Below, in pieces: positions 21,001 through 53,393 of a stretch of DNA of 64,000 bases (within the stretch, counting starts at the first letter, position 1; each line of letters opens with the position of its first letter). A program made the position numbers and the translations under genes. Source of the stretch: Convolutriloba macropyga (taxonomy: Eukaryota). Where the stretch lies: contig NC_134478.1 in the NCBI RefSeq assembly GCF_964194025.1, positions 36,642,001 through 36,706,000 of the forward strand, written 5' to 3'. The notes beneath the pieces were generated by a model. The model was not told the origin of the DNA and ran no database searches. It saw only the letters and a list, made by a program, of their open reading frames with translations.

Positions 21001-21756
21001 TATGATGTGATTTGAATGAAGAGTGTATACCAAATTGATGAGAAGCATTCTTTGCTGACATGGCAACGTGCTGATCCTCCTCCACATCATCTCTCTGTCT
21101 GCGGCTCTCCTCAAGGTTGGCGAGACGCTTCCTCAGTTCCACAAAGTTCTCTGCAGGATTGAAGCTCTCCTCTACCACAAAATGCTCGTATCGTTGTGGA
21201 AGTCCGTTCAATACCATTGCATTAAAAAGCGTCTCAGAAGGCTCCTCACCAGCATGATGCAATCGGGTGACCAGTTCTTGCGCTCTGATGAAGTACTGGT
21301 GAATGACTTTGTCCTCTTGAAGTTGTAGTCTGGCCAACTGCCTCATCAGACGGATGACTGTGGTTGTCTCGTCGCTTCTGAATCGTTGCTGGAGAAGTTA
21401 GCACGCTTTCTGGCTATCTCCGAGACCCTTGCTGTTCAAAGAGTCATGTCGGATGAGCATGAGGCTGCTGGCATCTAGCGTCATTGCCAGGTAGCACCTA
21501 ATCTGATTTTTGCGGCTCTCATCGTCCTGTACAGCTGTAGCTCTAGCATGAGTCTGTGCCTCGTGTTCTCGCGTTTGCTCATCATTAGCATCTTCCCTCA
21601 GTGGTGCTGGCCTGTCAGGTAGGTCAACTGTGTCTGTGAGCGTTTCGAAGAGCCCCTTGGTTTGTGCAAAGGCAGAGAAACTAGTGCTCCATGTTGGGTA
21701 GTCCTCAGCCGACCGCTAAACGTCATCCACTTCAAACTATTGTTTGATGGTTCCAT
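18016..21756 (-). pseudogene. Copia-1 gag-pol polyprotein, frameshifted, with internal deletions in the protease region and most of RNase H
   Basis: ATG at 21756 (MEPSNNSLKWMTFSG). ORF-track pieces 20864-21346 (gag), 19833-20396 (IN), 18785-19000 and 18149-18535 (RT). RT jumps from RPDIIWITNIIS straight to the RNase H C-terminal ..YTPTDEMSADLLTKSLP. Confidence 0.9.
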
Positions 21757-23099: not shown

Positions 23100-23921
23100 A
23101 ATGAGCGTTTTTCATAGTTTAACTTTTCAAAAACTATTACCTAAGTACATAACCAGGTTTTGCATTTTAATAACCTTTTCTGTTTTCCACGGTTTGAGAC
23201 CTTGAATTCCAGGTGAAAATTCAACTGTAATTTTTCTGTACTTTCCAGAGAAGTTGTTTCTTTCTGATTTAAAAAATTGTAATTTCTGATTTAAAACTGA
23301 TTGCAGGTATTTTTTCACTGATTATCAAGGAACCGTGGAATGATAAAGCAAATTAATAGAAGTCATCCCAACTGCGCAAATTAACTAAACTGATGAATAC
23401 TGGTGATGTCTTAGAGTCGAAGAATAGTTATTAAATGCTCATTCCGTTGGAATACATTTGTGTATGGCGCATGTTGTTTTAATTTATCGCAACAATTTTG
23501 TTCCAACTTTTACTTCACTTCGCAAAAAATACTTCAACTCTCATTTTATGACAAGATGAACTCCTAAGTAATTCACAACTGGATTTTTTAAATCATATTT
23601 GGCTTTATAAAAATAAAGGACTTTTTAAAAGGCGAGGTGTTAACAGACAGTTAATTAACTTTCCTTTTACAATTTGCCTTTTGAAAAGTCATTTAATTTT
23701 TTTAAAAAGCCAAATATGATAATTGAAATTTCAGTAGTGAATTACTTAGGAGCTCATTCACGCCCCTTCAAAATTTTTTTCAAATTAAACAATAGTTTCG
23801 CTGGCTGATTTTTAATTTTATTAATCGATTTATCGCATGTTAAATTTACAATATCATTAGCATTGTGAATTATCTCAACTTCAGTGTCTATTACGAGGAC
23901 ATTTGAGTTGTATTATAAGTA
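23100..23921 (-). pseudogene. Highly decayed LINE ORF2 3' part (insertion target, left flank of the CMC element)
   Basis: Minus-strand translation near 23840-23900 gives IIHNANDIV, resembling the RT (I/L)xYADDxV motif; GIQGLKPW near 23190 resembles the C-terminal GxxLWN motif. Very degenerate. Confidence 0.4.
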
Positions 23922-23967
23922 CCCAGGTTTAGGTGCGCGACCCTAGACCGCTCTGATCAGACCATTT
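23922..23967 (+). repeat. Left terminal inverted repeat (46 bp)
   Basis: CCCAGGTTTAGGTGCGCGACCCTAGACCGCTCTGATCAGACCATTT is the exact reverse complement of 48252-48297. Confidence 0.95.
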
Positions 23968-24418
23968 GGGTCGCACACCGGTGGCGTGGTGCGACCCAAA
24001 TCACATGGTCTGGGAAACGCTTGAGTCGCACGATGGTCTGGACAATGGTCGCACTACGGTCTGATCAGAGGGCAAAGTCTGGAAAATGGTCTGGACAATG
24101 GTCGCACTACGGTCTGATCAGAGGGCAAAGTCGCACTATGGTCTGATCATAGGTCGCACGAAAGTCTGGACAATGGTCGCACTACGGTCTGATCAGAGGG
24201 CAAAGTCGCACTATGGTCTGATCATAGGTCGCACGAAAGTCTGGACAATGGTCGCACTACGGTCTGATCAGAGGGCAAAGTCGCACTATGGTCTGATCAT
24301 AGGTCGCACGAAAGTCTGGACAATGGTCGCACTACGGTCTGATCAGAGGGCAAAGTCGCACTATGGTCTGATCATAGGTCGCACGAAAGTCTGCTAATGG
24401 TCGCACTACGGTCTGATC
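23968..24418 (+). repeat. Left subterminal repeat array, including 4 x 78-bp perfect tandem units of GGTCGCAC / GGTCTGATCA motifs
   Basis: 26-aa periodicity of spurious ORF 24086-24397; GTC cores recur about every 11 bp. Confidence 0.92.
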
Positions 24419-24734
24419 GATGTTTCGATAGCTGAAATAGGTGTTAAATACTGTCGGAAAAAATCTACAGTTGAACTAACGAACAACTTTTTGAGATTTT
24501 CCAGTATGTTTTGGGTGTGTTCCCCTCCTCCTTCTCTCAACCGGGCTGGGGACCGGCTACGGCGGAGTTACAAACGAACAACTATAGGAGATTTTGAGTA
24601 GAGCTTTAGGTAAAAAAACCAAGCTCAAACTCTATCTCCGAAAAAAACAAACCATAATAAATCGATAAAACACTACAAATGATAAATGATTGCTATAAAA
24701 CAACATCTGACTACAATTAAAATTTAAATATAGT

Positions 24735-27700
24735 TAAATTTCGTTATTCGATAAATTCGCAAATTTCCGTATGAAAACCTAACTTTTTTCCTAGGCAAGC
24801 TATACCAAAAATTCTTTTTGTTTTACAATCTAGTTACCCATGGAATACTCGATACCGAGTTTGGTTAGATTTGGACAACTCCTTGACCCGATGAAAAAGA
24901 CCTATTTCTAAAATTCGTTATTCGCGAAATTCGCAAATTTCCGAATGAAAAACTAACTTTTTTCCTAGGCAAGCTATACCAATAATTCCTTTTGTTTTAC
25001 AATCTAGTTACCCATGGAATACTCGATACCGAGTTTGGTTAGATTTGGACAACTCCTTGACCCGATGAAAAAGACCTATTTCTAAAATTCGTTATTCGCG
25101 AAATTCGCAAATTTCCGAATGAAAAACTAACTTTTTTCCTAGGCAAGCTATACCAATAATTCCTTTTGTTTTACAATCTAGTTACCCATGGGATACTCGA
25201 TACCGAGTTTCGTTTGATTTGGACAACTCCTTGACCCGATCAAAAATACTATATTTAAAAATTAAATATTCGAAATAATCGCAAATTTCCGTATGAAAAC
25301 CTAACTTTTTTCCTAGGCAAGCTATACCAAAAATTCTTTCTGTTTTAGATTCCAGGCTCCCGTGGTATACTCCATGCCGAGTTTGGTTCGATTTGGACAA
25401 CTCCTTGACCCGACGAAAAAGACCTATTTTTAAATATACTTATTCAAAATTATTCGGAAATAATAGCAAATTTCCGTATGAAAACCTAACTTTTTTCCTA
25501 GGCAAGCTATACCAAAAATTCTTTTTGTTTTACAATCTAGTTACCCATGGGATACTCGATACCGAGTTTGGTTAGATTTGGACAACTCCTTGACCCGATG
25601 AAAAAGACCTATTTCTAAAATTCGTTATTCGCGAAATTCGCAAATTTCCGAATGAAAAACTAACTTTTTTCCTAGGCAAGCTATACCAAAAATTCTTTTT
25701 ATTTTACAATCTAGTTACCCATGTGATACTCGATACCGAGTTTGGTTCGATTTGGACAACTCCTTGATCCAATAAAATTTCTATTTTTTTGAAAATAGAA
25801 TAAGCGAATAAGTCGATTTTTCCGATTGAAATATGAACTTTTTTTCTAGGAAAGTTAGGCCGACCATTCTTTTTTTATTACAACCTAAATGTTACTGGTA
25901 GTCTGGGATCTCAATTTGGTTCACTTTGAACAACTTCTTTACCCGATAAAAACAGACCTATTGTTATAATTCGTTATTGGAAATAATCGCAAATTTCCGT
26001 ATGAAAAACCAACTTTTTTCCTAGGCAAGCTATAGCAAAAATTCCTTTTGTACTACATTCCACATACACATGGGATACTCGATACCGAGTTTGGTTCGAT
26101 TTGGACAACTCCTTGACCCGACGAAAAAGACCTATTTTTAAAATTCGTTATTTGCGAAATTCGCAAATTTCCGTATGAAAAACTAACTTTTTTCCTAGGC
26201 AAGCTTTACCAAAAATTCTTTCTGTTTTACAATCTAGTTACCCATGGGATACTCGATACCCAGTTTGGTTCGATTTGGACAACTCCTTGACCCGACGAAA
26301 AAGACCTATTTTTAAAATTCGTTATTTGCGAAATTCGCAAATTTCCGTATGAAAACCTAACTTTTTTCCTAGGCAAGCTATACCAAAAATTCTTTCTGTT
26401 TTACAATCTAGTTACCCATGGGATACTCGATACCCAGTTTGGTTCGATTTGGACAACTCCTTGACCCAACGAAAAAGACCTATTTTTAAAATTCGTTATT
26501 TGCGAAATTCGCAAATTTCCGTATGAAAACCCAACTTTTTTCCTAGGCAAGCTATACCAAAAATTCTTTCTGTTTTACAATCTAGTTACCCATGGGATAC
26601 TCGATACCCAGTTTGGTTCGATTTGGACAACTCCTTGACCCAACGAAAAAGACCTATTTTTAAAATTCGTTATTTGCGAAATTCGCAAATTTCCGTATGA
26701 AAAACTAACTTTTTTCCTAGGCAAGCTACACCAAAAATTCTTTTTGTTTTACAATCTAGTTACCCATGGGATACTCGATACCAGGTTTGGTTCACTTTGG
26801 ACAACTCCTTGACTCGACGAAAAAGACCTATTTTTAAAATTCGTTATTTGCGAAATTCGCAAATTTCCGTATGAAAACCTAACTTTTTTCCTAGGCAAGC
26901 TATACCAAAAATTCTTTCTGTTTTACAATCTAGTTACCCATGGGATACTCGATACCCAGTTTGGTTCGATTTGGACAACTCCTTGACCCAACGAAAAAGA
27001 CCTATTTTTAAAATTCGTTATTTGCGAAATTCGCAAATTTCCGTATGAAAAACTAACTTTTTTCCTAGGCAAGCTATACCAAAAATTCTTTTTGTTTTAC
27101 AATCTAGTTACCACTGGGATACTCGATACCAGGTTTGGTTCACTTTGGACAACTCCTTGACTCGACGAAAAAGACCTATTTTTAAAATTCGTTATTTGCG
27201 AAATTCGCAAATTTCCGTATGAAAACCTAACTTTTTTCCTAGGCAAGCTATACCAAAAATTCTTTCTGTTTTACAATCTAGTTACCCATGGGATACTCGA
27301 TACCCAGTTTGGTTCGATTTGGACAACTCCTTGACCCAACGAAAAAGACCTATTTTTAAAATTCGTTATTTGCGAAATTCGCAAATTTCCGTATGAAAAA
27401 CTAACTTTTTTCCTAGGCGAGCTATACCAAAAATTCTTTTTGTTTTACAATCTAGTTACCCATGGGATACTCGATACCAGGTTTGGTTCACTTTGGACAA
27501 CTCCTTGACTCGACGAAAAAGACCTATTTTTAAAATTCGTTATTCGATATAATCGCAAATTTCCGTATGAAAACCTAACTTTTTTCCTAGGCAAGCTATA
27601 CCAAAAATTCTTTCTGTTTTAGATTCTAGGCACTCATGGTATACTCCATACCCAGTTTGGTTCACTTTGGGCAACTCCTTGACCAGACGAAAAAGACCTA

Positions 27701-29710
27701 TTTTTAAAATTACTTTTCAAAATTATTCGGAAATAATAGCAAATTTCCGTACGAAAAGCTAACTTTTTTCCTAGGCAAGCTATACCAAAAATTCTTTTTG
27801 TTTTACAATCTAGTTACCCATGGGATACTCGATACCAGGTTTGGTTCACTTTGGACAACTCCTTGACTCGACGAAAAAGACCTATTTTTAAAATTACTTA
27901 TTCAAAATTATACCGAAATAATAGCAAATTTCCGTATGAAAAGCTAACTTTTTTCCTAGGCAAGCTATACCAAAAATTCTTTCTGTTTCAGATTCTAGGC
28001 ACCCATGGTATACTCCATACCCAGTTTGGTTCTCTTTGGACAACTCCTTGACCCGACGAAAAAGACCTATTTTTAAAATTATTTATTTGAAATAATCGCA
28101 AATTTCCGTATGAAAACCTAACTTTTTTCCTAGGCAAGCTATACCAAAAATTCTTTTTGTTTTACAACCTAGTTACCCATGGGATACTCGATACCGAGTT
28201 TGGTTCGATTTGGACAACTCCTTGACCCGATCAAAAATACTATATTTAAAAATTAAATATTCGAAATAATCGCAAATTTCCGTATGAAAACCTAACTTTT
28301 TTCCTAGGCAAGCTATTTCAAAAATTCTTTCTGTTTTAGATTTTAGGCATCCATGCTAAACTACATACCCAGTTTCGTTTACTTTGGACAACTCCTTGAC
28401 CCGACGAAAAAGACCTATTTTTAAAATTACTTATTCAAAATCATACCGAAATAATAGCAAATTTCCGTATGAAAAGCTAACTTTTTTCCTAGGCAAGCTA
28501 TACCAAAAATTCTTTCTGTTTCAGATTCTAGGCACCCATGGTATACTCCATACCCAGTTTGGTTCTCTTTGGACAACTCCTTGACCCGACGAAAAAGACC
28601 TATTTTTAAAATTATTTATTTGAAATAATCGCAAATTTCCGTATGAAAACCTAACTTTTTTCCTAGGCAAGCTATACCAAAAATTCTTTTTGTTTTACAA
28701 CCTAGTTACCCATGGGATACTCGATACCGAGTTTGGTTCGATTTGGACAACTCCTTGACCCGATCAAAAATACTATATTTAAAAATTAAATATTCGAAAT
28801 AATCGCAAATTTCCGTATGAAAACCTAACTTTTTTCCTAGGCAAGCTATTTCAAAAATTCTTTCTGTTTTAGATTTTAGGCATCCATGCTAAACTACATA
28901 CCCAGTTTCGTTTACTTTGGACAACTCCTTGACCCGACGAAAAAGACCTATTTTTAAAATTACTTATTCAAAATCATACCGAAATAATAGCAAATTTCCG
29001 TATGAAAAGCTAACTTTTTTCCTAGGCAAGCTATACCAAAAATTCTTTCTGTTTCAGATTCTAGGCACCCATGGTATACTCCATACCCAGTTTGGTTCTC
29101 TTTGGACAACTCCTTGACCCGACGAAAAAGACCTATTTTTAAAATTATTTATTTGAAATAATCGCAAATTTCCGTATGAAAACCTAACTTTTTTGCTAGG
29201 CAAGCTATAGTAAAAAATCTTGTTGTTTTAACCTCTAATCACAATAGTGATACTCCATACCGAGTTTGGTTTGATTTGAACAACTCCTTGACCCGATAAA
29301 AAAGACCTATTTCTAAATATACTTAATCAAAATTATTCGGAAATAATCGCTAACTTCCTTATGAAAACCTAACTTTTTTCCTAGGCAAGCTATAGCAAAA
29401 ATTCCTTTCGTACTACATTCCACATACACATGGGATACTCCATACCAAGTTTGGTTAGATTTGGACAACTCCTTGACCCAATAAAAATCCTATATTTTTG
29501 AAAAAAGAATAAGCGAATAAGTCGACATTTCCGATTAAAATCCGAACTTTTTTCCTAGACAAGGGATAGCAAAAACTCTTTTTGTTTGACACTCTAGGTA
29601 CCCATGGTATACTCCATACCGAGTTTGGTTCGATTTGGACAACTCTACGACTTAATCAAAAAGACCTATTTCAAAAAATTATTTAAAATTAATTATTCGA
29701 ATTAATCGCA
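24735..29710 (+). repeat. ~176-bp satellite array (left), about 28 units, with 181-bp variants and a 533-bp 3-mer higher-order repeat
   Basis: Unit AATTTCCGTATGAAAACCTAACTTTTTTCCTAGGCAAGCTATACC...TTTGGACAACTCCTTGACCCG recurs every 176 bp; identical spurious ORFs at 27851, 28384 and 28917 (period 533). Confidence 0.97.
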
Positions 29711-30633: not shown

Positions 30634-31945
30634 AAGCTATACCAAAAATTCTTTCTGTTTCAGATTCTAGGCACCCATGGTATACTCCATACCCAGTTTG
30701 GTTCTCTTTGGACAACTCCTTGACCCGACGAAAAAGACCTATTTTTAAAATTATTTATTTGAAATAATCGCAAATTTCCGTATGAAAACCTAACTTTTTT
30801 GCTAGGCAAGCTATAGTAAAAAATCTTGTTGTTTTAACCTCTAATCACAATAGTGATACTCCATACCGAGTTTGGTTTGATTTGAACAACTCCTTGACCC
30901 GATAAAAAAGACCTATTTCTAAATATACTTAATCAAAATTATTCGGAAATAATCGCTAACTTCCTTATGAAAACCTAACTTTTTTCCTAGGCAAGCTATA
31001 GCAAAAATTCCTTTTGTACTACATTCCACATACACATGGGATACTCCATACCAAGTTTGGTTAGATTTGGACAACTCCTTGACCCAATAAAAATCCTATA
31101 TTTTTGAAAAAAGAATAAGCGAATAAGTCGACATTTCCGATTAAAATCCGAACTTTTTTCCTAGACAAGGGATAGCAAAAACTCTTTTTGTTTGACACTC
31201 TAGGTACCCATGGTATACTCCATACCGAGTTTGGTTCGATTTGGACAACTCTACGACTTAATCAAAAAGACCTATTTCAAAAAATTATTTAAAATTAATT
31301 ATTCGAATTAATCGCAAATTTCCGTATGAAAAGCTAACTTTTTTCCTAGGCAAGCGATAGCAAAAACTCTTGGCATTTTGAACTCTATATATAGATGGTA
31401 TAATCCAAACCGAGTTTGGTTCACTTTGGACAACTCTAAGATCTAATCAAAAAGACCTACTTTTAAAATTACTTATATGAAATAATGAGAAATAATAAAG
31501 CATCATGCAGAAAGCGCTTATCTTGTAAGATCCTGCAATTTCACGCATGGCAATGGCACACAAGGCATGGCCAAACGCGCTGAATGTGCAGATCTTTAAT
31601 AGTAAAATGGGGTTTATTTCCTTGGGGGTTTTTTTCCGTGGGGGTTCATTTACGTGGGGGCTTATTTCCTATCTAGAACTAAGTGGGGGTTTTTCCGTGG
31701 GGGTTTATTTCCTAGACCCAACCTGTGCAAAGCTATAGCAAAAATTCTTTTTGTACTACACTCTACCTACACATGGGAAACTCTATACCGAGATTGGTTT
31801 GATTTGGACAACTCAATCAAATAAACGATATAATCGCAAATTTCCGTATGAATTATCAACTTTTTTACTAGTCAAGCTATAGCAAAAATTCTTGGCATTT
31901 CAGACTCTACATACAAAGTGGATAATCCATAAAATTCTTGGCATT
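30634..31945 (+). repeat. Continuation of the 176-bp satellite (30634-31315 duplicates ~29030-29710), interrupted by a short G-rich insert at ~31500-31720
   Basis: The same run of variant units is present in both places; satellite decays by ~31945. Confidence 0.9.
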
Positions 31946-32033: not shown

Positions 32034-34986
32034 TCAATTATGCTCATAATGTCGCAATAAACACAACAAATACACAGTTTCCTTGAAAGCAAGATAAAAC
32101 AATTTAGTTTGAACAGACGCGAGCGGTACCTTCACTGTAACATCCGAATCTTTTACAGCAAAACCAAAAGGAACATGCACCTCATAATCAGTTTTGACTA
32201 ATTTAATTTTCTTAAGAATCTCAAATTTTCGCAATAGACAACATTGCACACTGTCTTCGAAAAAAATATGATTTCGCCGACAACAATTTCTTTATCAATT
32301 TTTGCTGCAATATACTTGTCCATCCCAGAACCACGACCATAGGCACAAGAAGACAGCAAAAAGCGCTGGAGATATCGACAAGATAATTTAGCTCCAGGGT
32401 TTTCGATGCTGAACTTTAGCGTCTCTGAGCTCTCAACAAAACCTTTAACATTGTCGAAGGCTTTATGCTGCTGGAAATTCTTTAAAGTTCCAGCCAAGCA
32501 ATCATTCTCAACTTTCATTTTGGCAACAAACTTTGATCTAATAAATCTGTCGACCATCAATTGACATTGATTTACTGTTCCGGTCAAAGGAGCTATGAGC
32601 ATCCTGTTAGCTGATTCAAACATGAACGCTGATGTTGTGAAGAGTGGTCCCATATACTTAACTTGCCATGCTAAGTGTCTCAGCAAGTGAAAATTAATTG
32701 AGTCCATTTTTTCTGATTTTTCACCCACACTCAGGCAGAATTCATTCAGTAATCGATTGCAGAATTCAACATTCGCAGACGACTCATACAATTCTCGAAC
32801 CGAAAACACTAATTTTTTGATATCAACCTCATCCGTTCTTCTTTCCTCACCAAACAGAAACGGTGGCAAAATGACAGGAGCTAAATATAACAAGACAGTT
32901 TTCACTTCTTTTGCTTTCCAGGACGACAACACATTAAAAGAACGAACTGTATTCTTTAGCTCTTTGGGTAACTTGAGTCCCGTCAGAAAATCATTCAACT
33001 CAAGCTTGTGCTCAGTCCTCATCTTATCATAAAAAAAGCAAAAATGTCCTTTCCAACTCCTAGAAACAGCTGATGCATAGGATCGACAGGTGAGGTAAGT
33101 GGCTGACCTGGGATGACGTCAAAAACTTTGCTGCGTCCCTTCACACCCTGAGTCCGAGCTTCACAGTCCGCGTTTTTTCCTTTTTCTAGCCTAATTTGCT
33201 CAATACTTCCATCAAAGAGTGCCTGAAGATTGATCTTATGTGATTCAGCAGATCTCATCGTAAATGCCTCATTATGTGGATAGTGATGTGCGCCACCAAT
33301 ATGAACTCCCCGCTGAGTGCACAAGGTACAACCGTAATACCCATTGCATTGTTTCATTTTCAGTACCTTAGCTTTTCCAATTAGGTCACAAACAAGAAGT
33401 ATCGGTTGCAGTCTAACTACTATGTCATTGCCTTTGTACTTGACAATATCGCTACCGGACAATTGCCTTTCGATATGTTCGAAGAAAGAATCAAAATCAG
33501 GAACACTTTGACCAACAAACAAAGCCGCAAGAACTATGTTTTCAAAAGCTTGTCTTTTCTTTGGTGGAAGATCTGCAACAGCAATAAAAAGGGGCCAAGC
33601 GGAAGTTACGGGTGACTTGCAAACATTGGCACCATCAGTGTTTAAAATTAGTCTAACTGACAGCTGGTTATTGGAAATTTGCAATTTCGGCATGATAATA
33701 TCGTTCGATTCTATTTTGGTTTCAGCGTACAAGATGATTTCATCTAAAGAATTTTCTACAATTTGAATGAGGAGAGCACGAAAATTCAACCACATAATCT
33801 CTCCATTTTCTACAATTTGTTTTTTTGACTCGTATATATCGTAAAACTGAGACAACTTCGTTTTGACTGTCCAAGGAGAGATACTTTGACCTCCAAACAA
33901 AATTTGATCTCTTTTAAGAAGGTCGGCCAGCAGGGAATCAGGTGCATTATGCTCAGCAGCTATTGCAAGAAGTGAAGATGCAAGATTATTCGGTGATACT
34001 TCTTCGACTTCTTTCAGACGCCTACCACTATAATTCGCGCAAAGTAGAGTGTCGGTTTCTTCTTGGCTAAATTGAGTATCCGATTCGTCGCTGCAAACTT
34101 TACTGCGATAAGGACTGAGCGGGCGCGAAGCTAGAGAGACACTACTGCAAGCATCATCCGAGAACAAAAACTCGTCCAATGAAACATCGGAAACCGATTG
34201 GTCGTCCGAGGGAAGAACAACCGGGTACTCAAGCTCGATAGAGCTTTCTACTGATGTAACACTTATTGCGTTTGATCCCTCATCATAAAAATTGAAAAGA
34301 TTTGACAGAGGACCCTTCGGTGTATCGACAGGTGTAATTTTTATTCGAGGCTTCATTTTTCTAAGTCGCTTCGCCTCAAGAATTGGCAAAGGAATTTCAA
34401 CAGGTTCTTCTTCAATACTTTCACCATGACACTCTGTGTGACCACAAAGACAGTCAACGTTATTCTCTCCAAAAAAGTGCTCATTGTAAAAGCAAAGCAG
34501 TTCTTCTCCATCATGAATTTCCTTGAGAGCTCGTAATCGAACGCATTCACGCCCTTTAAACCCTCTGCCCATGTAGAAATCGCAGTTAGCTTTGCATGAG
34601 TGATTCGCCCAGCGCGCAACACCAACTAACAACTTCTCACCATCCATCAGAGACCATTCATCAACTTCACGGCCTTTAGGTTTTTTTGTAAGAAGTCCAA
34701 CTGTAGCATCAATTTCTCCTGGTTTAATAGTCTTTCCACTTCTATTCACTAATTTATATCCACCAAAACTGTCTGGTTCTAAGCGAAAACCGGCACTATG
34801 AGCTTCGGAATAAATGTTGGTCATGTCGGTAAACAGCTTCTGAAGAAAACGATCTTGTCCCAACTGCACTAAAAATCTCTGTTCCGAAAGAGGTGTTGTC
34901 ATAGCGTGCGGTTCTCGGCCTCCCGATTCAATAAACTTAATGGAAACAAAACACTCAACCTGGCAAAACTTCTCAAACGGATCCAT
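32034..34986 (-). CDS. SET-domain (Suv4-20/KMT5B-C-like histone methyltransferase) fused to a CACTA/EnSpm-type DDE transposase, ~984 aa after repairing two 1-bp homopolymer frameshifts
   Basis: N-terminus: GVARWANHSCKANCDF...RALKEIHDGEELLCFYNEHFFGENNVDCLCGHTEC (SET + post-SET). Then an acidic/Ser linker, then transposase motifs LNTDG, SAWPL, CDLIGKA..NGYYGCTLC, DPMHQLFLGV, WKAKE, NFHLLRHL, GPL..SAFMFESAN and C-terminal EHN. ORFs 33019-35001, 32198-33022 and 32034-32249 join if one base is added to each A7 run (33031-33037; 32260-32266). Confidence 0.9.
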
Positions 34987-35380
34987 CGGAACTGAAAACA
35001 AAAGCCAGAGCTGAATGAAGGTTTCTGCGAATTTTTCAAAAAAAGACTAAACACAAAGCAAATGAATGCTTAACTCAATTTTCAGGTTTCTAACTTTCAC
35101 AAACTCGGAGAAAATTTAATTATAGCAAACATCAATTTAATTATAACAACATAAGACTAATCATCCCATCTATCAGAGGCGAATACCGCATTTAAAGGTA
35201 AAAACAAACTTTCTGCAACAAAAGATAAATAACAATAAATAACTTCAAATCTTCTGCACAATAGTAACTGCAAGCAACAACTTGAAAAACAGTACTGGCA
35301 AGTTTCATCATAATTCTGTCTGTCTGCATTTCAACTGCAGAATAAAAAACACAATGAGAGTTTCAATGCTGCTCACAAAA

Positions 35381-37031
35381 TCATTGTGTATTCTCGGGCG
35401 TTGTAACCGCGTCGGGTCCTTGACTTCTTCTCAAAACGCTTCGCCTCTCAAGTCCCGCCTGATTTGCAGCACTTTTTGCTTTTTTGAATGCAAGACAAGG
35501 GGTCAAGGGGTACTTCTGTCGAACGACCTCTGAAAACGATTAACGCAAAAATCCTCCCTGGTCACAAGCAAAAAAAAAACAAACATCTAATGGTAGAACA
35601 GTGCTTGAGGATAACTTCATATCATGAATCAACCTTAGAGCTTTTTGATGTGTAATTAATTTCACCAATTGGTTGACTTTCATTAAAGCTTTTTCATAAA
35701 CCTGAACAACTAAAACAGACAAGTACCCTTGAATACTGCAGTTGCGTCCTTATCAGCCTCCTTCCGCACTGGCGAGTTTTCGCTTTCAATCATTTCATTA
35801 ACAAGTCCATTGTCTCCAAATAGACATTTCCTCAGATTCCGCCCAAACACTGATGGGTACGAGTTTGCCTGCAGCTCCTCCATTAGATTTTTCCCCTCAA
35901 AAAGTACAACTGAAGTTGGATAGCTCTTCTTCAGTTCAGGGTCTTCGTCGACACTTTGAAAACCAGATTTCTGCAGAATTGCAACTTCTTTAAGCTCGCC
36001 AACCTAGAAAAATAGCTTTTAAAAAATAATCGTTAAGGAAAACCAGGTGATATTTACTAAATCATCAAAAAAGCAGATTTCTGCAGAATTGCAACTTTTT
36101 TAAGCTTCGCCAACATAGAAAAATAAGTTTCAAAAAAAGAAAAATAATTGTTAGGGAAAACTAGGTGATATTTACCAAATCATCAAACTCTCTCATCATC
36201 TTTCGCCTGTTCTTGTCAGCTTTCCTCTTAGCTTCTTCGACAACTTTTTCAGCACGCTTCATTCTTTTTGCATGCCCTTCCACAAAGTCCGCAAAATCGT
36301 TGCAAATGTTGCATTCATCCTGCAAAAAAAACGAACCAATATACTTCGTTGCTCATTGTAAACCAGGGATAACCAATTACATTAACAGCTATCTCTGCAG
36401 GAAAATTATTTACCTCGTCAAACTCGTCATCAACTCCTACTTCGTCTGCTGATGACTGCAATAAAGCCGGTTGGTGCGAACTCGTTCCTTGCGGCTCTCT
36501 GCTCAACACTGGTGGGTTTTCAGAAATTCCAGTGCCACCAATTGCCGAATTACCCAAATATACTGTCTGACTAGATATGCCCGAACGCGACTGACTCTGC
36601 GCTGTATTTTCAGATTCGTTTTCAGAAGCTCGAGCTTGATTTCGCGATGACACAGGAGTAGAAATCTCACTAACAACATCCACAAAAAACACAGGTTGCT
36701 CACCCCGATTCAAACGCTTGGCAGTTATAGCTTTATGCTCTCCAATTTGCTTAGATGGCCCCTTTCCTAGATATATAGCCCTCCTGATACCGTTCCTGTG
36801 AATGATCGACACCCATTCGCCGTGCTTAAGAGAGAGTTTATCGTCTTTAGTCACACCAATCGGCCATATCGGTCCATCAAGAGAAGTTGAAACGACTGCT
36901 TTTTCGTAATAAAAAAGCCACCTCGTGTCCCGATTCTCTTCCCTTATATGCCGCACTACTCTTGTTTCTGGATCGGTTTCAAAATTTTTTGGCTTGACGG
37001 CCCTTTTACCGGATTTTCTTGATTGAGACAT
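35381..37031 (-). CDS. Transposon accessory gene B, 4 exons, 395 aa: N-terminal beta-rich domain, low-complexity linker, CxxC + coiled coil, BEN-like C-terminal domain
   Basis: Exons 37031-36414, 36319-36176, 36003-35727 and 35529-35381, all GT-AG, total 1,188 nt in frame. C-terminus PSVFGRNLRKCLFGDNGL...RKEADKDATAVFK/EVVRQKYP..AFKKAKSAANQAG. BEN assignment is by pattern only. Confidence 0.75.
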
Positions 37032-37591
37032 TCTTTCTCTGGAAAAAATAACGACTGATGAAGCTTCAAGCGAAATAACTAAACAACCAAAATGACGACC
37101 GTAAAAACAGTTTTCTTTGAAGTTCGCATATTGAAGAAAATTCAAGACAACTTCAACTTTTCACCGAAACAAGATACGCTCGTACTTCAACTAATGCCGT
37201 ATAATAAATTTCCCTCTTAGAAAAAACACTAAACAAAATTTATTTAAGTTTCTGTAATTAGGGCACATTGACCATTGAAGCTATCGAAAGAGGCGACAAT
37301 AAATATAAATGCTCTGAACAAACTTCGTGGCCAATTCTCAAGCGACATGGTTACGTTGTTTCAAGAAATCGCATCTGCACAATAACAATCTCAACTAACT
37401 AACTTCAAAACTGAATGTAGCAAAATTAAACAAAAGTAAAACACAAAATTAATCATGTAAGCTGATGAGAAAAGTTCTCATTTAAAATAAAGAAAAGGCA
37501 TCAACAAAATAACAGCAGGGTATAGCTATCAATTCATACGCTAAATGCTCAAAGTTCTATGCATGAGTGCCATCAACTTCGGCTGGTTCGC

Positions 37592-38026
37592 TTATATAAT
37601 GTTGAACACATGTAAATCACTCTGCTGTTCACCAGTCTCATTGGGCTGTTCAGCAGAAGCAGGCGTTGCTTCGGAACTCAATGCGACTGGGGCATTTGCG
37701 ACCACATTTTCAGACTCCACAAAAAGCTCGTAATCCAATCCATTGGAAAGACGAATTAATGTTTGCATTCTATGCTCTGCAATTTGTCTAGAAGGTCCTT
37801 TGCCTAAGAAAATTGCGTTCCTAACAACATTTCTGTGAATAATTGCAGCAAAGTCACCGGGATTTAGAGAGAGCTTGTAACTTTCCGTGGTACTCAATGG
37901 CCAGATTGTACTGTTCAAGTCAGCAACTACCAATGCATCAGCGTAGTAAAATAACCACTTCGTGTCACGCAAATATTCTGAACGCGAATCAGTCTGAGGT
38001 TCAACGGTTTCGCTTGATTGAGCCAT
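37592..38026 (-). CDS. Transposon accessory gene C, 144 aa, paralogue of the N-terminal domain of gene B
   Basis: RDTKWLFYY...IWP...KLSL..G....IIHRN..R.AIFLGKGPSRQIAEH aligns with gene B RDTRWLFYY...IWP...KLSL..G....IIHRN..R.AIYLGKGPSKQIGEH. Confidence 0.7.
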   Translation of the reverse strand: MAQSSETVEPQTDSRSEYLRDTKWLFYYADALVVADLNSTIWPLSTTESYKLSLNPGDFAAIIHRNVVRNAIFLGKGPSRQIAEHRMQTLIRLSNGLDYELFVESENVVANAPVALSSEATPASAEQPNETGEQQSDLHVFNII

Positions 38027-38520
38027 GTTTTCTCTGAAACCAAACATAAAGTAAATAGAGATTGATAGCGTGGTGCATAGTTAATAAACACAGCTTAGAA
38101 AACAGGAAAACAATTAGGAAATTGCAAAAAAATTTTAAACTTTTTAGAAACAGATGACTACTTCAAATGTAAATTTAAGGTTTCAACTAATATGATTCAC
38201 AATTAAATCGCTTAGATCCGCACTTAAATAAACTCTATTCAAACTTAGAAATTTTTAGAATGAGTTCAGATTAAAATGTACTACCAAAATATCAAACTAA
38301 ACATTTTAACGGAATTCAAAATCGAGAAAATAGATCACATTTATCAAATTTACAACGCAAAATAGCAGTCCCAAAGATTAACATCGCACAAATTCCGAGA
38401 ACAAAATTAAAAACAATCACTGAAGCTCATCAATTTTTGAAAACAATGAATCTAAATTTAACATGTGCTATCTTGATACAGGTTTTTCAGTTGAATTTAT
38501 AGAACGCCACATTGCGAACT

Positions 38521-39890
38521 TCATTTCTCTTTCATCTTATAGCTTTCCTTCTTCTTTTGCTGCGCTTCAGAGCTGTACTTCCCCCTTTTTTCCATTCTCT
38601 GTCGAGCGTTCAAGCCGCTTTTGTTAGCTGAAAGTCTGGCCTGCTTCTTGGCGTTAGGGAATCTGTCTCGAGGAAACTTCCGTTCAACTGCACCTAAGTA
38701 ATTTTGATACGACTTACCATAATAGTATTTAGAAAAACATGAAATAAATGAACTTCAAAACGCACTGGTTGTGGGAGTTAAAAGATTGAACTCTACGTTT
38801 GAACAATTAACATTTTGTTAATGAGATCTGAATAAGAGGAAGAAAAGGATTAAGATAATTAACTCACGAAAAAAAGTCAGCATTTTATCAACAGCTGCGC
38901 ACTTTCTTCCAGTTGAAACGTTTTTTGCTGGCAAGATCATGTCGTAGGCCAATCCGTTGACTCCCCATATCCATTTTCTCAAAACCATTCCGTAGACATA
39001 AGGTGAATGTCCAGCATACACGTGATCTAAGTTCTTGCTGTTTAAACCAAACTGTAGAGGAGGCTTTAGTTCAACCTGGTTCACCAGAAGAGATTCCTGT
39101 AATTCATCGATGTCTTCTCCGTTTTCATTGGCAGCTGCCCCGGTCTCATTTTCAATGTCATCAAAATCCTCTCCCAGAGCATCTTTCACCTGTTAATGGA
39201 AACCTACCTCTTTACCGAACCTTCAAAGGAGTTTCACAAAAAATGAACGCTTACAATCTTGGATAGCTTTCTTTTCAACAGCGCCAATTCTTCCATAGTC
39301 TCATTGGATTGACGTTGCATGTTCCCGATCACGTCGTGCACGGTCTTCGCACTTATCAGCATAGTCTCAGCTATTTCTCGGTGTTTTGCGCAGCACTAAA
39401 AATTTGAACAGCTTAGGAAAATCCAAAGATTTTTATATAAAAAGGTACCCTAGGTATCATTGTCAACTAATATAATTAAAGATAATGATGGCTGTCTAAG
39501 TACACTAATTTATATTTATGAAAAAGAAATTGAATTAGAAAGAGCTTGAAAATATACCATGACATTCTCGCAGTGTTCGGGTTTTGATTGCTCTTTCTCC
39601 ACTGCAAGAGAAGCACTGTCAGGATTTTCAGGACACTCATCGTCAGTGTCGCAAGCTATGTTCAAACTTCGTTTCAGTTCTTTAAGATCCTTCGTGAAAT
39701 CCCCCGTTCCCTGTTTAATAACCTTGTAACATCTTACTTGGCCATCTTTCAAAAGCGACACCTGATTCCCCGTTGTTGTAGTAATTTTATCCATATAGCT
39801 TTTGTTCCCCCACATCTCTGAGTTTTCACTGATTATTCGGGCATCATCTCGCTCAACAGTGAGTATGAGCCAGTGGAATTGATGTTCCAT
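38521..39890 (-). CDS. Transposon accessory gene A, 4 exons, 322 aa, paralogue of gene B (coiled coil + BEN-like C-terminal domain)
   Basis: Exons 39890-39558, 39395-39255, 39189-38868 and 38693-38521, all GT-AG, total 969 nt in frame. Same intron phases (0,0,1) as gene B. C-terminus PYVYGMVLRKWIWGVNGL...GRKCAAVDKMLTFFR/AVERKFP..AKKQARLSANKSG. Confidence 0.75.
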
Positions 39891-39929
39891 AACAAATGAC
39901 CTGAAGAGAAAATAACCCTGAACAAAATG

Positions 39930-42900
39930 ACGCAAATTTCCGTATGAAAACCTAACTTTTTTCACACGCAAGTTATAACAAAATCTTGACATTTTGACTT
40001 TGCATACACAGTGGATACTCCATACTAAATTTGGTTCACATTGGACAACTCCTTGACCCGATTCAAAAGAACTATTTTTAAACTTCGTTATTCGAGAAAT
40101 TCGCAAACTTCCGTATGAAATACCAACTTTTTTCCTAGGCAAAAAGCTATAGAGAAAACTCTTTTTTTGTCCTACACTCTTACTTTACAGGGGAAACTTT
40201 ATACCCAGTTTGGTTCGATTTGAACAACTCTATGACCTAATCAAAAAGACCTATTTCAAAAATTATTTAAAATTAATTATTCGAATTAATCGCAAATTTC
40301 CGTATGAAAAGCTAACTTTTTCCTCGGCATGCTATAGCAAAAATTCTCGGCAATTCAGACCCTACATATACAGGGTATACTCCATACCCAGTTTGGTTCG
40401 ATTTTAACAACTCTATGACCTAATCAAAAAGACCTATTTTAAAAAATTATTTAAAATTAATTATTCGAATTAATCGCAAATTTCCGTATGAAAAGCTAAC
40501 TTTTTCCTAGGCATGCTGTAGCAAAAATTCTTGGCATTTCAGACTCTACACATACAGCATACAGGGTATACTCCATACCCAGTTTGGTTCACTTGGGACA
40601 ACACCTTGACCCGACGAAAAAGACCTATTTTTAAAATTACATATTCAAAATTATTCCGAAATAATAGCAAATTTCCGTATGAAAATCTAACTTTTTTCCT
40701 AGGCAAGCTATACCAAAAATTCTTTTTGTTTTACAATCTAGTTACCCATGGAATACTCGATACCGAGTTTGGTTCGATTTGGACAACTCCTTGACCCGAC
40801 GAAAAAGACCTATTTTTAAAATTACTTATTCAAAATTATTCGGAAATAATAGCAAATTTCCGTATGAAAAGCTAACTTTTTTCCTATGAGAGCTATAACA
40901 AAAACTCTTTTTGTTTTACAATCTAGTTACCCATGTGATACTCGATACCGAGTTTGGTTCGATTTGGACAACTCCTTGATCCAATAAAATTTCTATTTTT
41001 TTGAAAATAGAATAAGCGAATAAGTCGATTTTTCCGATTGAAATATGAACTTTTTTTCTAGGGACGTTAGGCAAACCATTCTTTTTGCATTACAGCCTAA
41101 ATATTACTGGTAGTCTGGGATATCAATTTGGTTCACTTTGAACAACTCCTTGACCCGATGAAAAAGACCTATTTTTAAAATTCGTTATTTGCGAAATTCG
41201 CAAATTTCCGTATGAAAAACTAACTTTTTTCCTAGGCAAGCTATACCAAAAATTCTTTTTGTTTTACAATCTAGTTACCCATGGGATACTCGATACCAGG
41301 TTTGGTTCACTTTGGACAACTCCTTGACTCGACGAAAAAGACCTATTTTTAAAATTCGTTATTCGATATAATCGCAAATTTCCGTATGAAAACCTAACTT
41401 TTTTGCTGGGCAAACTATAGTGAAAAATCTTGATGTTTTACCCTCTAATCGCAATACTGATACTCCATACCGAGTTTAGTTTTATTTGAACAACTCCTTG
41501 ACCCGATAAAAAAGAGCTATTTTTAAATATACTTAATCAAAATTATTCGGAAATAATAGCAAATTTCCGTATGAAACACTAACTTACTTCCTAGGCTAGC
41601 TATACAAAATATTCTTGGCATATTATACTCTGCATACACACAGGAACTCTGAATATGAGTTTGAAGAGATTTGAACAACTTCTTGACCCGATAAAAAAGA
41701 CTTATTTTTAAAATTTGTTATTCGAAATAATCGCAAATTTCCGTATGAAAAACTAACTTTTTTCCTAGGCAAGCTATACCAAAAATTCTTTCTGTTTTAC
41801 AATCTAGTCACCCATGGGATACTCGATACCGAGTTTGGTTCGATTTGGACAACTCCTTGATCCGATGAAAAAGACCTATTTTTAAAATTCGTTATTTGCG
41901 AAATTCGCAAATTTCCGTATGAAAAACTAACTTTTTTCCTAGGCAAGCTATACCAAAAATTCTTTCTGTTTTAGATTCTAAGCTCCCGTGGTATACTCCA
42001 TGCCGAGTTTGGTTCGATTTGGACAACTCCTTGACCCGACGAAAAAGACCTATTTTTAAATATACTTATTCAAAATTATTCGGAAATAATAGCAAATTTC
42101 CGTATGAAAACCTAACTTTTTTCCTAGGCAAGCTATACCAAAAATTCTTTCTGTTTTACAATCTAGTTACCCATGGGATACTCGATACCGAGTTTGGTTC
42201 GATTTGGACAACTCCTTGACCCGACGAAAAAGACCTATTTTTAAAATTATTTATTTGAAATAATCGCAAATTTCCGTATGAAAACCTAACTTTTTTCCTA
42301 GGCAAGCTATACCAAAAATTCTTTTTGTTTTACAATCTAGTTACCCATGGGATACTCGATACCGAGTTTGGTTCGATTTGGCCAACTCCTTGACCCGATG
42401 AAAAAGACCTATTTTTAAAATTCGTTATTTGCGAAATTCGCAAATTTCCGTATTTAAAACTAACTTTTTTCCTAGGCAAGCTATACCAAAAATTCTTTCT
42501 GTTTTACAATCTAGTTACCCATGGGATACTCGATACCGAGTTTGGTTCGGTTTGGACAACTCCTTGACCCGACGAAAAAGACCTATTTTTAAAATTCGTT
42601 ATTTGCGAAATTCGCAAATTTCCGTATGAAAAACTAACTTTTTTCCTAGGCAAGCTATACCAAAAATTCTTTCTGTTTTACAATCTAGTCACCCATGGGA
42701 TACTCGATACCCAGTTTGGTTCGATTTGGACAACTCCTTGACCCGACGAAAAAGACCTATTTTTAAAATTCGTTATTTGCGAAATTCGCAAATTTCCGTA
42801 TGAAAACCTAACTTTTTTCCTAGGCAAGCTATACCAAAAATTCTTTTTGTTTTACAATCTAGTTACCCATGGGATACTCGATACCGAGTTTGGTTAGATT

Positions 42901-43132
42901 TGGACAACTCCTTGACCCAATAAAATTTCTATATTTTTGAAAAAAGAATAAGCGAAAAAGTCGATTTTTCCGTTGGAACTATGAACTTTTTTTCTAGGAA
43001 AGTTAGGCCGCCCATTCTTTTTGTATTACAACCTAAATGTTACTGGTAGTCTGGGATATCAATTTGGTTCACTTTGAACAACTTCTTGACCCGATAAAAA
43101 ATACATTTAAAATTCGTTAATCGCGAAATTCG
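39930..43132 (+). repeat. ~176-bp satellite array (right), about 18 units, same family and orientation as the left array
   Basis: Same unit sequence; shares diagnostic variant units with the left array (for example ~25750-25960 versus ~40965-41150 and ~42900-43100). Confidence 0.97.
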
Positions 43133-43407
43133 AAGCTAAGCAAGGTTTAAATAAAGTTTGCAATTTAAACACGGCAGTTTTCTGAAAGCCTTTTTGTAAT
43201 CTAGGGATATACCCTGCAGGCAATAAGAAAAAAGCCATGTGGGTTGAAAAATAGAAAAGAATTAAATAAACAACATAAACGCCAATGTGGCCAAAACGGT
43301 TACTTCAGGAAGTATAAATTGGTTGACAGCTCAATCTAATAGCTCAAGAGAACAATTTAGCTAAAATACAACGATTCAAAAACAACAATTCAAAAACAAA
43401 GCACACT

Positions 43408-43992
43408 TCAAAATTCAAGAATCTTAAAATCATCATTCGCAAACTTTCTATACGAGAGCCGAAGCTTCTTCCCCCAGCATGTCAGAACAGGTCTTCTGCG
43501 ATAAATTGGCTCCTTGGTTTTCTTGGTAATCGCACCGCATTTATAGTCCTTTGTTTTCCCGATTTTCAATAGTTTCATTCCAGGAATCTTGCCTGCCTCT
43601 ATTTCACGAATGGCCCTCTTACAATGTCCGACACCGAAGAAATTAATCCAACCATTATAGATTCTGCTTTTCTTTTGATTTGGCCTCAACTTCCCAAGTT
43701 TTACACTGTCAACACCGACAAACAGCTTCGCTACAGTGTTCATAACTTGCTCCGGTTCAACGTTTTTCGCATCGAAGTCCACAAATTTAAACGACATTGG
43801 TAGCATCTCCTCTATCTTTCTTTTAGCACGCCATAACTTTGCTCTCTCCTCCTTCTCTTCCTTTGCCAACTTAAAGTTCTCTACTCTTCCCGCTTTCCAT
43901 TCACCACCTGGTTTTTCCAACTCTTCCACAAAAACAGCACTTCCAACAGCTTGACCCTCTTCAATTTTATCCATCTGATCTGAAAAGGTCAT
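43408..43992 (-). CDS. 194-aa basic protein with a possible RRM-like fold
   Basis: Uninterrupted ORF. FKFVDF..VEPEQV...LFVGVDSVKL...RIYNGWINF...CKRAIREI resembles RRM beta1-alpha1-beta2-RNP1-alpha2 spacing. Confidence 0.5.
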   Translation of the reverse strand: MTFSDQMDKIEEGQAVGSAVFVEELEKPGGEWKAGRVENFKLAKEEKEERAKLWRAKRKIEEMLPMSFKFVDFDAKNVEPEQVMNTVAKLFVGVDSVKLGKLRPNQKKSRIYNGWINFFGVGHCKRAIREIEAGKIPGMKLLKIGKTKDYKCGAITKKTKEPIYRRRPVLTCWGKKLRLSYRKFANDDFKILEF

Positions 43993-47400: not shown

Positions 47401-47729
47401 NNNNNNNNNNNNNNNNNNNNNNNNNNNNNNNNNNNNNNNNNNNNNNNNNNNNNNNNNNNNNNNNNNNNNNNNNNNNNNNNNNNNNNNNNNNNNNNNNNNN
47501 NNNNNNNNNNNNNNNNNNNNNNNNNNNNNNNNNNNNNNTACATANNNNNNNNNNNNNNNNNNNNNNNNNNNNNNNNNNNNNNNNNNNNNNNNNNNNNNNN
47601 NNNNNNNNNNNNNNNNNNNNNNNNNNNNNNNNNNNNNNNNNNNNNNNNNNNNNNNNNNNNNNNNNNNNNNNNNNNNNNNNNNNNNNNNNNNNNNNNNNNN
47701 NNNNNNNNNNNNNNNNNNNNNNNNNNNNN
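47401..47729. other. Assembly gap (N run with a 6-base island)
   Basis: Ns in the sequence. Confidence 1.
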
Positions 47730-47939: not shown

Positions 47940-48251
47940 TGGGTCGCACTATGGTCGCACAATTTTTCGGTCGCACAAAAGTCGCACAAATTCTGCACAC
48001 ACTATGGTCGCACCAAAGTCGCACAAAAGTCGCACAAATTTTCTGGGTCGCACTATGGTCGCACCATTTCTTGGGTCGCACTATGATCTGATGGTCGCAC
48101 TACGGTCTGATCAGAGGACTTTGGGTCGCACGATGGTCTGATCAGAGGTCTTTTGGGTCGCACTATGGTCGCACGATTTCTTGGGTCGCACTACGGTCTG
48201 ATCAGAGGGCCTTGGGTCGCACGATGGTCTGATCAGAGGGCAAAGTCTGGA
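47940..48251 (+). repeat. Right subterminal repeat array (GGTCGCAC / GGTCTGATCAG motifs)
   Basis: Same motifs as 23968-24418, in the same (direct) orientation; both ends share GGTCTGATCAGAGGGCAAAGTCTGGAAAATGGTCTG. Confidence 0.92.
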
Positions 48252-48297
48252 AAATGGTCTGATCAGAGCGGTCTAGGGTCGCGCACCTAAACCTGGG
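48252..48297 (-). repeat. Right terminal inverted repeat (46 bp)
   Basis: Exact reverse complement of 23922-23967; ends CTGGG. Confidence 0.95.
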
Positions 48298-48634
48298 AAT
48301 CAATTTCCATTTGAATGAGCTGTAATATTTCATGTTTTAGCTATCTCTTCTTCGATGGTAGGTTCATAAATTTGTCGGAATTTTCATTTAATTTTTGAAT
48401 TACAATTCATTTGTTAATTGCTTCAACCTCAAGAATTATCCGAAAAATTTGTTTTCGTAGCAATTGTTAGTTTCTCCTTATTTGTTTTTTCCATTATGGG
48501 CATGGAAATATTTGACCATTTTTCTTTGAAAAAGGTTATATTTTCTACAACTCTACTTTATTCTAAGTAGTCATCCAATTCTCAATTCTTGATTCTATGA
48601 ACCGTCGAGATGAACGCCAGTGTTGATTAATTTT

Positions 48635-52200: not shown

Positions 52201-53393
52201 TCTGGAGTTTCATGCAGCTATTTCCCTTCTCGAAAGTGAAGCTTTGTCCCCACTCCGTCTGATAAGAGGTTTGAAGACTGATAAGAGCTTTGAAGAGTAG
52301 TCCGGCACACGCAAAATCTTTTTGAAATCGCATTGGATTTGCCCTTTGTTCGAGGAGATGCTGATCCTCACACAGCCTCTGCCCGCCACACTGGAGGGCT
52401 CTCTGTTGGGATTTTTGACCACTGATTGAATGCGCACAAATTCTAGGAGCGCATCGATGTTCGTCACTATGTGATCTGTACAACCACTGTCCACTTGCAT
52501 GCTTCCTGTCTTTCACTGGGTAAGAGAGCCAATGTTGAACCATTGCCACTGACTCATGTTTGCCTTCATCTCTTTTTCTTTTGCATGCCCTGTCTAGGTG
52601 ACCTTTCTCACCACACTTGCTGCATTGTGTTGTCCTCTTCCTCCTGCAGTCCTTGGCAAAGTCTCCAGAGATCCCACACACAAAGCAGTTTCCTTTCTCG
52701 GGTCCCTTCTTGAAGTCACGCTTCACTGCCAGTGCCACTGAAACACTTTCTCCTTTGTGCCTCTGTGCTGTGCTCTCATGTAAGTTCTGCAGCCTTTTCT
52801 TCAACTCTCTGCAGTTCGTTACCGGTTAAAGCTTTCCTGTATAACAAAACTTTCTTACCTCATTGGCAGACCATTGAGGACCAGGGCGTTGAAGAGGGCC
52901 TCTGAGACTGCTTCCGCTGCTTCTTGTAGCCTTGTGAGCAACTCCTGTCCTCTGATGAAGAAGCTATCCAAATCCTCAGCATCCTTGAGCTGCAGTTGAG
53001 CAAGCTGTGTCACCAAAGTCACTACTGTCGGCGGTTCTACAATCTGAAATTTCTCTTGCATCTCCACTGCCGTCATTTCCCACACGTCATGTCTCATCAG
53101 CATAAAGGTTGTTGCATCTAGCGTCAGTGCCAGAGAGCACCACACATTGCTACGTTTCTCTATGATGTCTGCAACTTCCTTCTCGAATGCATCCTTCAGC
53201 ACCCTGTGGTTCTTCTTTTCATCATAGCTCACCCCATTGGCTAGTGGTGCAGGCTTATTGGGTTGCTCTTCTGTCGGAAGTAGTGATTTGTAGAGTCCCT
53301 TCGTCTGCATCATTGCCACAAAGCTTGTGCTCAAGATTGGAAGGTCCTGTGCCTTTCTTGTAAGGTCAGCAGCTTCACTGACTGTTGATACAT
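49247..53393 (-). pseudogene. Copia-2 gag-pol polyprotein, multiply frameshifted
   Basis: ORF-track pieces 52855-53334, 52187-52804, 52210-52500, 51511-52116, 50584-50925, 50300-50866, 49938-50363, 49552-49830 and 49247-49489. Confidence 0.9.

Follow-up and report, generated by a model that had tools for sequence, protein, structure and literature searches.

A predicted CMC-type transposase carrying a KMT5-like SET domain in a multi-copy transposon of Convolutriloba macropyga

Results

A SET domain and a transposase in one coding region

The window analysed here is a stretch of 64,000 nucleotides from Convolutriloba macropyga (assembly GCF_964194025.1, contig NC_134478.1, positions 36,642,001 to 36,706,000 of the forward strand); all positions below are counted from its first letter. 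Its minus strand holds a coding region that joins a SET domain resembling the SUV4-20/KMT5 histone methyltransferases to a DDE transposase of the CMC (EnSpm/CACTA-Mirage-Chapaev) type, within an element of about 24.4 kb. From the N-terminus the protein consists of the SET domain, a basic patch, an acidic linker and the transposase. The motifs quoted in a first-pass annotation made from the letters (EWSLM, NHSC, CFYN and CLCGH) were all located in the window. The features of the coding region are as follows.

32034..34986, minus strand: SET::transposase coding region (tblastn of the intact relative P0002, 984 residues, against the window; frame scan)
34405..34986, minus strand: SUV4-20/KMT5-like SET domain with N-terminal helical bundle, residues 1-194 (Pfam, profile search of the PDB, AlphaFold2 model with Foldseek)
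34659-34645, minus strand: EWSLM, SET motif containing S112
34605-34594, minus strand: NHSC, residues 128-131, the S-adenosylmethionine-binding motif NHxC
34494-34483, minus strand: CFYN, catalytic tyrosine motif, Y167
34452-34438, minus strand: CLCGH, post-SET motif, C179 and C181
33997..34404, minus strand: linker, residues 195-330, a basic patch and then an acidic and serine-rich stretch (alignment A1)
32037..33996, minus strand: CMC-type DDE transposase (Pfam matches below cut-off; homologues P0169 and P0156 pass; motifs)
33642-33631, minus strand: NTDG, whose D belongs to the DDE triad
33393-33382, minus strand: VCDL, whose D belongs to the DDE triad
33333-33319, minus strand: GCTLC, C(2)C motif
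32692-32675, minus strand: FHLLRH, H(3)H motif
32620-32606, minus strand: FESAN, whose E belongs to the DDE triad
33031..33037, no strand assigned: first frame-shift site, a run of seven A (A7) on the plus strand (contigs of public runs: extra A behind 33030, run X1 depth 16.5/16.5)
32260..32266, no strand assigned: second frame-shift site, A7 on the plus strand (contigs of public runs: extra A behind 32259, run X1 depth 16.9/16.9)
34987..35004, minus strand: pyrimidine tract plus CAG, 5 nucleotides ahead of the start codon (read from the sequence)

The coding region begins at a conserved methionine at 34986 and ends with the stop codon at 32036-32034. It had been described as one frame running without stop or intron from the SET domain through an acidic linker into the DDE core. 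That order of domains was recovered; the unbroken frame was not, as the letters of the window carry two single-base frame shifts. Three frames result (34986-33040, 33031-32204 and 32264-32037, from tblastn with P0002 and the frame scan), and the first open frame, which starts at 35046, is terminated by a stop at 33021-33019. Contigs from four public runs of the same organism contain one A more (A8) at each A7 site, although these contigs cannot prove the absence of A7 at either site. A 330-nucleotide contig of run X1 with the extra A is otherwise identical to the window. By frame arithmetic, one added base per site places all three pieces in a single frame of 984 codons plus stop. Because the read contigs carry A8 at both sites, the two breaks can be read in two ways: the assembly undercalled the homopolymers, or near-identical sister copies differ here from the window's copy. 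The relatives lack introns, and P0002 is a continuous open reading frame (ORF) of 984 codons in its contig. Short-read contigs cover the junctions between SET domain, linker and transposase, with no breaks specific to them. The tract ahead of the start codon looks like a splice acceptor.

The SET domain is of the SUV4-20/KMT5-SET9 type

The SET domain scores above the curated Pfam cut-off (PF00856, 36.2 bits against 22.4, E 8.5e-9). In a single-sequence search of solved structures the best match was KMT5B (E 4e-13), followed by ASH1L (4e-6). A profile built from nine subfamilies and run against the PDB matched SUV420H1/KMT5B with an E-value of 2.6e-16, the match spanning almost the entire domain (profile positions 24-188), while the next family, NSD1 (2.9e-7), matched only positions 123-185 in the C-terminal third. 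In an exhaustive profile search KMT5B was likewise the next group after the fusion family itself.

A structural model of the SET domain was computed with AlphaFold2 from an alignment of 72 sequences and reached a mean predicted local distance difference test (pLDDT) of 93.9 and a predicted template-modelling (TM) score of 0.87; a first model, based on nine family sequences only, had a pLDDT of 52.7 and was discarded. When the model was compared with the PDB by Foldseek, the top 15 matches were all SUV420H1 or SUV420H2 (212-237 aligned columns, TM 0.62-0.73), a fold match to be read with the caveat that KMT5 sequences were included in the 72-sequence alignment. SETs of the MLL type came next, with TM about 0.4. 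The nearest AlphaFold DB clusters were KMT5B, KMT5C and fungal SET9, and a feature search with the SET domain ranked a KMT5C cluster first. Sequence and modelled fold thus bear out the specifically Suv4-20-like character that the first-pass annotation had recognised from motifs, and its proposed HMMER and Foldseek check of the N-terminal part gave the expected result. We assign the domain, on these comparisons, to the SUV4-20/KMT5-SET9 type.

Across the 72 sequences S112, N128, C131, Y167, C179 and C181 (window numbering) are invariant or nearly so, and S112, the serine of the DFSVM/EWSLM motif, is present in 72/72. The serine of DFSVM has a role in product specificity in SUV4-20. The third post-SET cysteine of KMT5 (CxCxxC) is replaced in the window's subfamily, which reads CLCGH...H and keeps C179 and C181. 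In a sister clade (P0069-P0156, alignment A3) NSDC stands in place of NHSC and the KMT5-like CxCxxC is kept; the window's clade shows the converse, with NHSC kept and the third cysteine lost.

The C-terminal part is a CMC-type transposase

Behind the SET domain, the basic patch KRLRKMKPRIK (34371-34339) is conserved in alignment A1 and resembles a nuclear localisation signal; the acidic and serine-rich stretch that follows it is poorly conserved. The window protein itself matches Pfam Transposase_21 (tnp2) at 22.6 bits and DUF1258 at 16.8 bits, both below the cut-offs. Two homologues exceed them (P0169 with 42 and 38 bits, P0156 with 45 bits) and align with the transposase part of P0002, P0169 over 711 residues at 33% identity (E 5e-96) and P0156 over 584 residues at 30% identity (E 9e-74). 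The whole protein retrieved Transposase_21/DUF1258 clusters in a feature search, with scores under 0.9 that serve as a lead only. The DDE triad, the C(2)C motif and the H(3)H motif are all intact in the window copy and conserved in alignment A1. This signature of D, D, C(2)C, H(3)H and E has been given for the EnSpm-Mirage-Chapaev-Transib group (PMC12730594). Judged by these matches and motifs, the C-terminal part is a CMC transposase that shares its frame with the SET domain, as the first-pass annotation had read it.

The fusion recurs and appears to be old

A word-based search recovered 24 relatives of 31-88% identity, standing for 679 gene calls and sharing the same layout; among them are intact proteins of 975-984 residues. 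Eight of these relatives were looked up, and all eight came from one ENA assembly. The same kind of search limited to the SET region returned nothing beyond the family itself. The exhaustive profile search, in contrast to the word-based one, gave 1485 proteins at E-values up to 0.001, and among its best matches were many proteins of about 1000 residues with an N-terminal SET and DUF1258/Transposase_21 downstream, from NCBI, ENA and Logan assemblies. Other copies, near and distant, therefore keep the SET part. P0022 and P0024 were considered as relatives without a SET and rejected, since each has a SET ORF immediately upstream.

At the loci of two distant relatives the two parts were called as adjacent ORFs. 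In L009 the SET (3720-4769) and the transposase (5001-6971) are in the same frame with 231 nucleotides between them; in L010 they lie at 3904-4974 and 5001-7022. This arrangement may stem from a break or an intron, or the gene may really be divided in two.

Host KMT5 proteins, among them one annotated as Frankliniella occidentalis KMT5B, make up a compact clade of the SET tree (100) with a long stem of 1.33. All transposase-linked SETs fall outside it and are deep and diverse; as the tree has no outgroup, they are either sister to KMT5 or more distant. Clades agree between the two parts of the protein: the window family groups with P0033, P0038, P0042 and P0049 at 98 in the transposase tree and 96 in the SET tree, and P0156 groups with the P0089 cluster at 100 and 99, respectively. 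The matching clades of both trees point to one fusion long ago that has since been passed on with the transposon lineage. The trees indicate that the fusion is ancient and speak against the idea that this element acquired a host gene recently. The earlier proposal that the element has captured an H4K20 writer is, if meant as host-gene capture, not supported, as the element SETs lie outside the host clade and co-diverge with their transposases.

In several AlphaFold DB entries whose automatic names are KMT5B-like or SUV420H2, the SET occupies the very N-terminus of a long protein (A0A6G0XUJ9, 952 residues; A0A2S2NMP6, 675 residues; J9KIW7, 660 residues). Such public proteins may be transposases of the present kind and not host methyltransferases.

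Both domains are conserved, the linker is not

Averaged over all pairs of the nine subfamilies, sequence identity reaches 54% in the SET domain and 56% in the transposase, against 23% in the linker. The ratio of nonsynonymous to synonymous substitution rates (dN/dS) of the SET domain in three within-subfamily pairs was 0.44, 0.27 and 0.33, rough values because every pair includes a broken copy and few substitutions; they probably understate the constraint. Pooled over the SET domain, nonsynonymous differences per site amount to one third of the synonymous ones (Fisher p 5e-6). Judging by these comparisons of coding sequence, the SET domain is kept by selection as strongly as the DDE core.

The surrounding transposon

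The gene lies inside an element bounded by terminal inverted repeats, in agreement with the first-pass annotation, and the two 46-nucleotide repeats are perfect. The other features of the element are listed below.

23922..23967, plus strand: left terminal inverted repeat, 46 nucleotides, begins CCCAGGTTTAGG (repeat search, 100% complementary)
48252..48297, minus strand: right terminal inverted repeat, 46 nucleotides (repeat search)
24025-24418: left subterminal repeats, tandem units of 75 nucleotides at 98%
47940-48239: right subterminal repeats, an array just inside the right end
35381..43992, minus strand: upstream accessory gene block of the same element (tblastn against L001, L002, L006-L008 and L003; tandem repeats)
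36315-37145, 37592-38047, 39516-40142 and 43408-43992, all minus strand: accessory ORFs
24734-29645, 30634-31467 and 39931-42925: 174-bp satellite arrays within the element, flanking the gene block on either side

The subterminal repeats read GGTCGCAC / GGTCTGATCAGAG. In the one copy examined the termini begin with CCCAGG, not with CA or CACTA. The left end (CCCAGG) is preceded by GTA (23919-23921) and the right end (CCTGGG) is followed by AAT (48298-48300), flanks with no direct repeat. Inverted repeats were also sought in the other fetched loci and none were found, but the flanking sequence there cannot accommodate 24 kb of element, and other subfamilies differ.

The accessory ORFs at 36315-37145 and 37592-38047 are paralogues with 38-40% identity. 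ORFs corresponding to all four precede the SET::transposase gene in other subfamilies (L001, L006-L008), at an equivalent relative position, and there is one weak match on the NCBI contig L003. A Pfam search gave no family for any of the four. The first 88 residues of 39516-40142 are merely translated satellite. The 174-bp satellite also flanks the gene block at six other loci (L001, L002, L006-L009), an arrangement thus conserved across subfamilies.

Runs of N occur inside the element near its right end (47401-47538 and 47545-47729). Fragments of Copia-type long terminal repeat retrotransposons (gag, integrase, reverse transcriptase) lie on either side of the element at 19262-21346 and 49938-53334 (minus strand), and a 474-bp tandem repeat (16 copies at 94% identity) runs from 56407 to the window end at 64000, outside the element.

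Discussion

A transposase that may mark chromatin

The observations are, in our judgement, probably best explained overall by the transposase of a multi-copy CMC-type transposon with a KMT5-like SET in the same ORF. That the gene represents a real SET::CMC-transposase, kept by selection and belonging to a mobile element, we hold with high confidence. On balance the conserved motifs favour a SET domain that is catalytically active, a prediction we make with moderate confidence, while H4K20 as its substrate, predicted by analogy, is doubtful enough to be named with low confidence.

A mechanism can be sketched from these parts. The basic patch (34371-34339) would carry the protein into the nucleus, where the transposase part would bind the element's own subterminal repeats and carry out cut-and-paste transposition. 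The SET domain would be tethered at the element ends through the flexible acidic linker and could methylate a lysine of neighbouring nucleosomes; analogy with the closest relatives of the domain suggests H4 K20 as the likeliest target. The outcome would be a chromatin mark at the element ends, the excision break or the insertion site. H4K20me2 is a docking mark for 53BP1 at breaks, and H4K20me3 marks heterochromatin, so such a mark could aid break repair or dampen the element. We favour help in break repair or in assembly of the transpososome as the effect; alternatively, H4K20me3 could build self-limiting heterochromatin that damps the element. Taken as a whole, the picture of an ancient, widespread and active cut-and-paste lineage, in which a transposase-borne KMT5-like methyltransferase marks its own ends, break or insertion site, is put forward tentatively, as possible rather than probable.

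Several points weigh against this interpretation. Should the two frame shifts be real, the window's copy may be a dead one. The zinc site of the SET domain, which comprises the cysteine of NHxC together with CxCxxC, is uncertain because the third cysteine of CxCxxC is not kept; nearby histidines might substitute. With only 20-30% identity to host KMT5 and a position beyond that clade, the element SETs do not allow a confident transfer of substrate specificity. Target-site duplications of 2, 3 or 8 bp were sought around this one copy and none were found. Public runs retrieved in an RNA-directed search and aligned with the window resemble DNA, since their depth is equally even inside and outside coding sequence and they show no splice joints, and in the Logan contig L005 neither a poly(A) tail nor a leader, looked for as a sign of mRNA, was found. 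The roughness of the dN/dS values belongs here as well.

Alternative explanations

The SET domain could be active on a substrate other than H4K20, such as a different lysine of a histone, a host repair factor or, by automethylation as reported for SETMAR (PMC2566874), its own transposase. Specificity could have drifted along the deep element-SET clades, separated from host KMT5 by the 1.33 branch and at 20-30% identity, but the fold of the whole domain, including the N-terminal helical bundle, and the serine motif typical of SUV4-20 have been kept, and we consider a different substrate unlikely.

Another explanation is a catalytically dead SET that serves as a nucleosome- or histone-tail-binding module and steers the choice of target site with no mark written. 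Replacement of the third post-SET cysteine in the window's subfamily and of NHSC by NSDC in one large sister clade would suit it, as would the non-catalytic nucleosome functions of KMT5B reported in the title of PDB 8t9f. Against it, the window's subfamily and most relatives show little or no variation in NHSC, the catalytic tyrosine, the family serine and CxC, which is the pattern predicted by selection for catalysis. We regard a dead domain as distinctly improbable.

A domesticated, SETMAR-like host gene that is no longer mobile shares with SETMAR the order of an N-terminal SET and a C-terminal transposase (PMC8704517). This explanation is already contradicted by the 679 gene calls in 24 clusters with many broken copies, several near-identical variants in the reads, the perfect 46-nucleotide inverted repeats with subterminal repeats, the intact DDE and zinc motifs, and a multi-gene element plan that recurs at different loci; its probability is very small indeed. 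A one-off chimera or misassembly, for which one could cite the two frame shifts of this copy and the stretch of N at 47401-47729 in another part of the element, has practically no probability left, as the architecture is family-wide, occurring in independent assemblies and Logan contigs, and short-read contigs cover the junctions without specific breaks.

We return to a CMC transposase with a KMT5-like SET as the preferred explanation. What sets it apart is the place of the SET within the transposase itself, across a deep and diverse lineage and apparently kept by selection. If the proposed mechanism is true, this would be the first transposase known to act as a histone writer within transposition itself and not after domestication. 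If the SET is active, the protein would be a natural DNA-targeted histone writer and would allow a direct test of how mobile elements use chromatin marks in repair, targeting and self-control. There is also a consequence for annotation, in that public 'KMT5B-like' proteins of about 950 residues with an N-terminal SET may be transposases of this kind.

Comparison with known systems

To our knowledge, transposons with epigenetic enzymes are rare curiosities in which the enzyme is nearly always a separate accessory gene, and the only well-studied SET-transposase fusion is SETMAR, a dead domesticated mariner.

The best relatives of the SET domain in sequence and fold are the H4K20 methyltransferases SUV4-20/KMT5B and KMT5C of animals and SET9 of fungi, with which it shares (D/E)(F/W)S(V/L)M, NHxC, the tyrosine of FYG/FYN and FFG..N..CxC. 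It differs from them in its identity of 20-30%, its position outside the tight host clade and, in the window's subfamily, the loss of the third post-SET cysteine; moreover, the element SET forms the N-terminus of a transposase, whereas theirs forms that of a chromatin protein.

With the CMC superfamily (EnSpm/CACTA, Mirage, Chapaev) the element shares the Pfam matches that pass in relatives, long inverted repeats with subterminal arrays and a large multi-gene layout. The N-terminal SET, the CCCAGG termini in place of CACTA or CA, and the lack of a 2-3 bp target-site duplication at this copy set it apart.

SETMAR (Metnase), the primate fusion of a SET with the Hsmar1 mariner, likewise has an N-terminal SET and a C-terminal transposase in one protein (PMC8704517, PMC2847698). 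In contrast to the present fusion, SETMAR is a single-copy domesticated host gene that arose by exon capture, with a SET of another class and a Tc1/mariner transposase now incapable of transposition, whereas the element fusion is the transposase gene of a multi-copy CMC lineage with intact catalytic motifs.

SET as a separate accessory gene has been described in HarbingerS and MuDR of Phytophthora, in Helitrons and in red-algal Plavaka PAG2 (DNA methylase plus SET), and other transposons with chromatin-modifier genes include the fungal TET/JBP-bearing transposons and VANDAL with its anti-silencing function (PMC12730594; bioRxiv 10.1101/2025.02.11.637652). SET genes are thus known on DNA transposons as accessory genes. 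We found no description of an in-frame fusion between a SET and a CMC transposase in the full-text literature, Repbase and Dfam lying outside this search, in keeping with the first-pass annotation, which knew of none. The accessory-gene transposons resemble the present element in being DNA transposons that carry an epigenetic enzyme of their own; theirs is a separate gene, whereas here a SET of the KMT5 type occupies the same ORF as the DDE transposase, in an animal genome.

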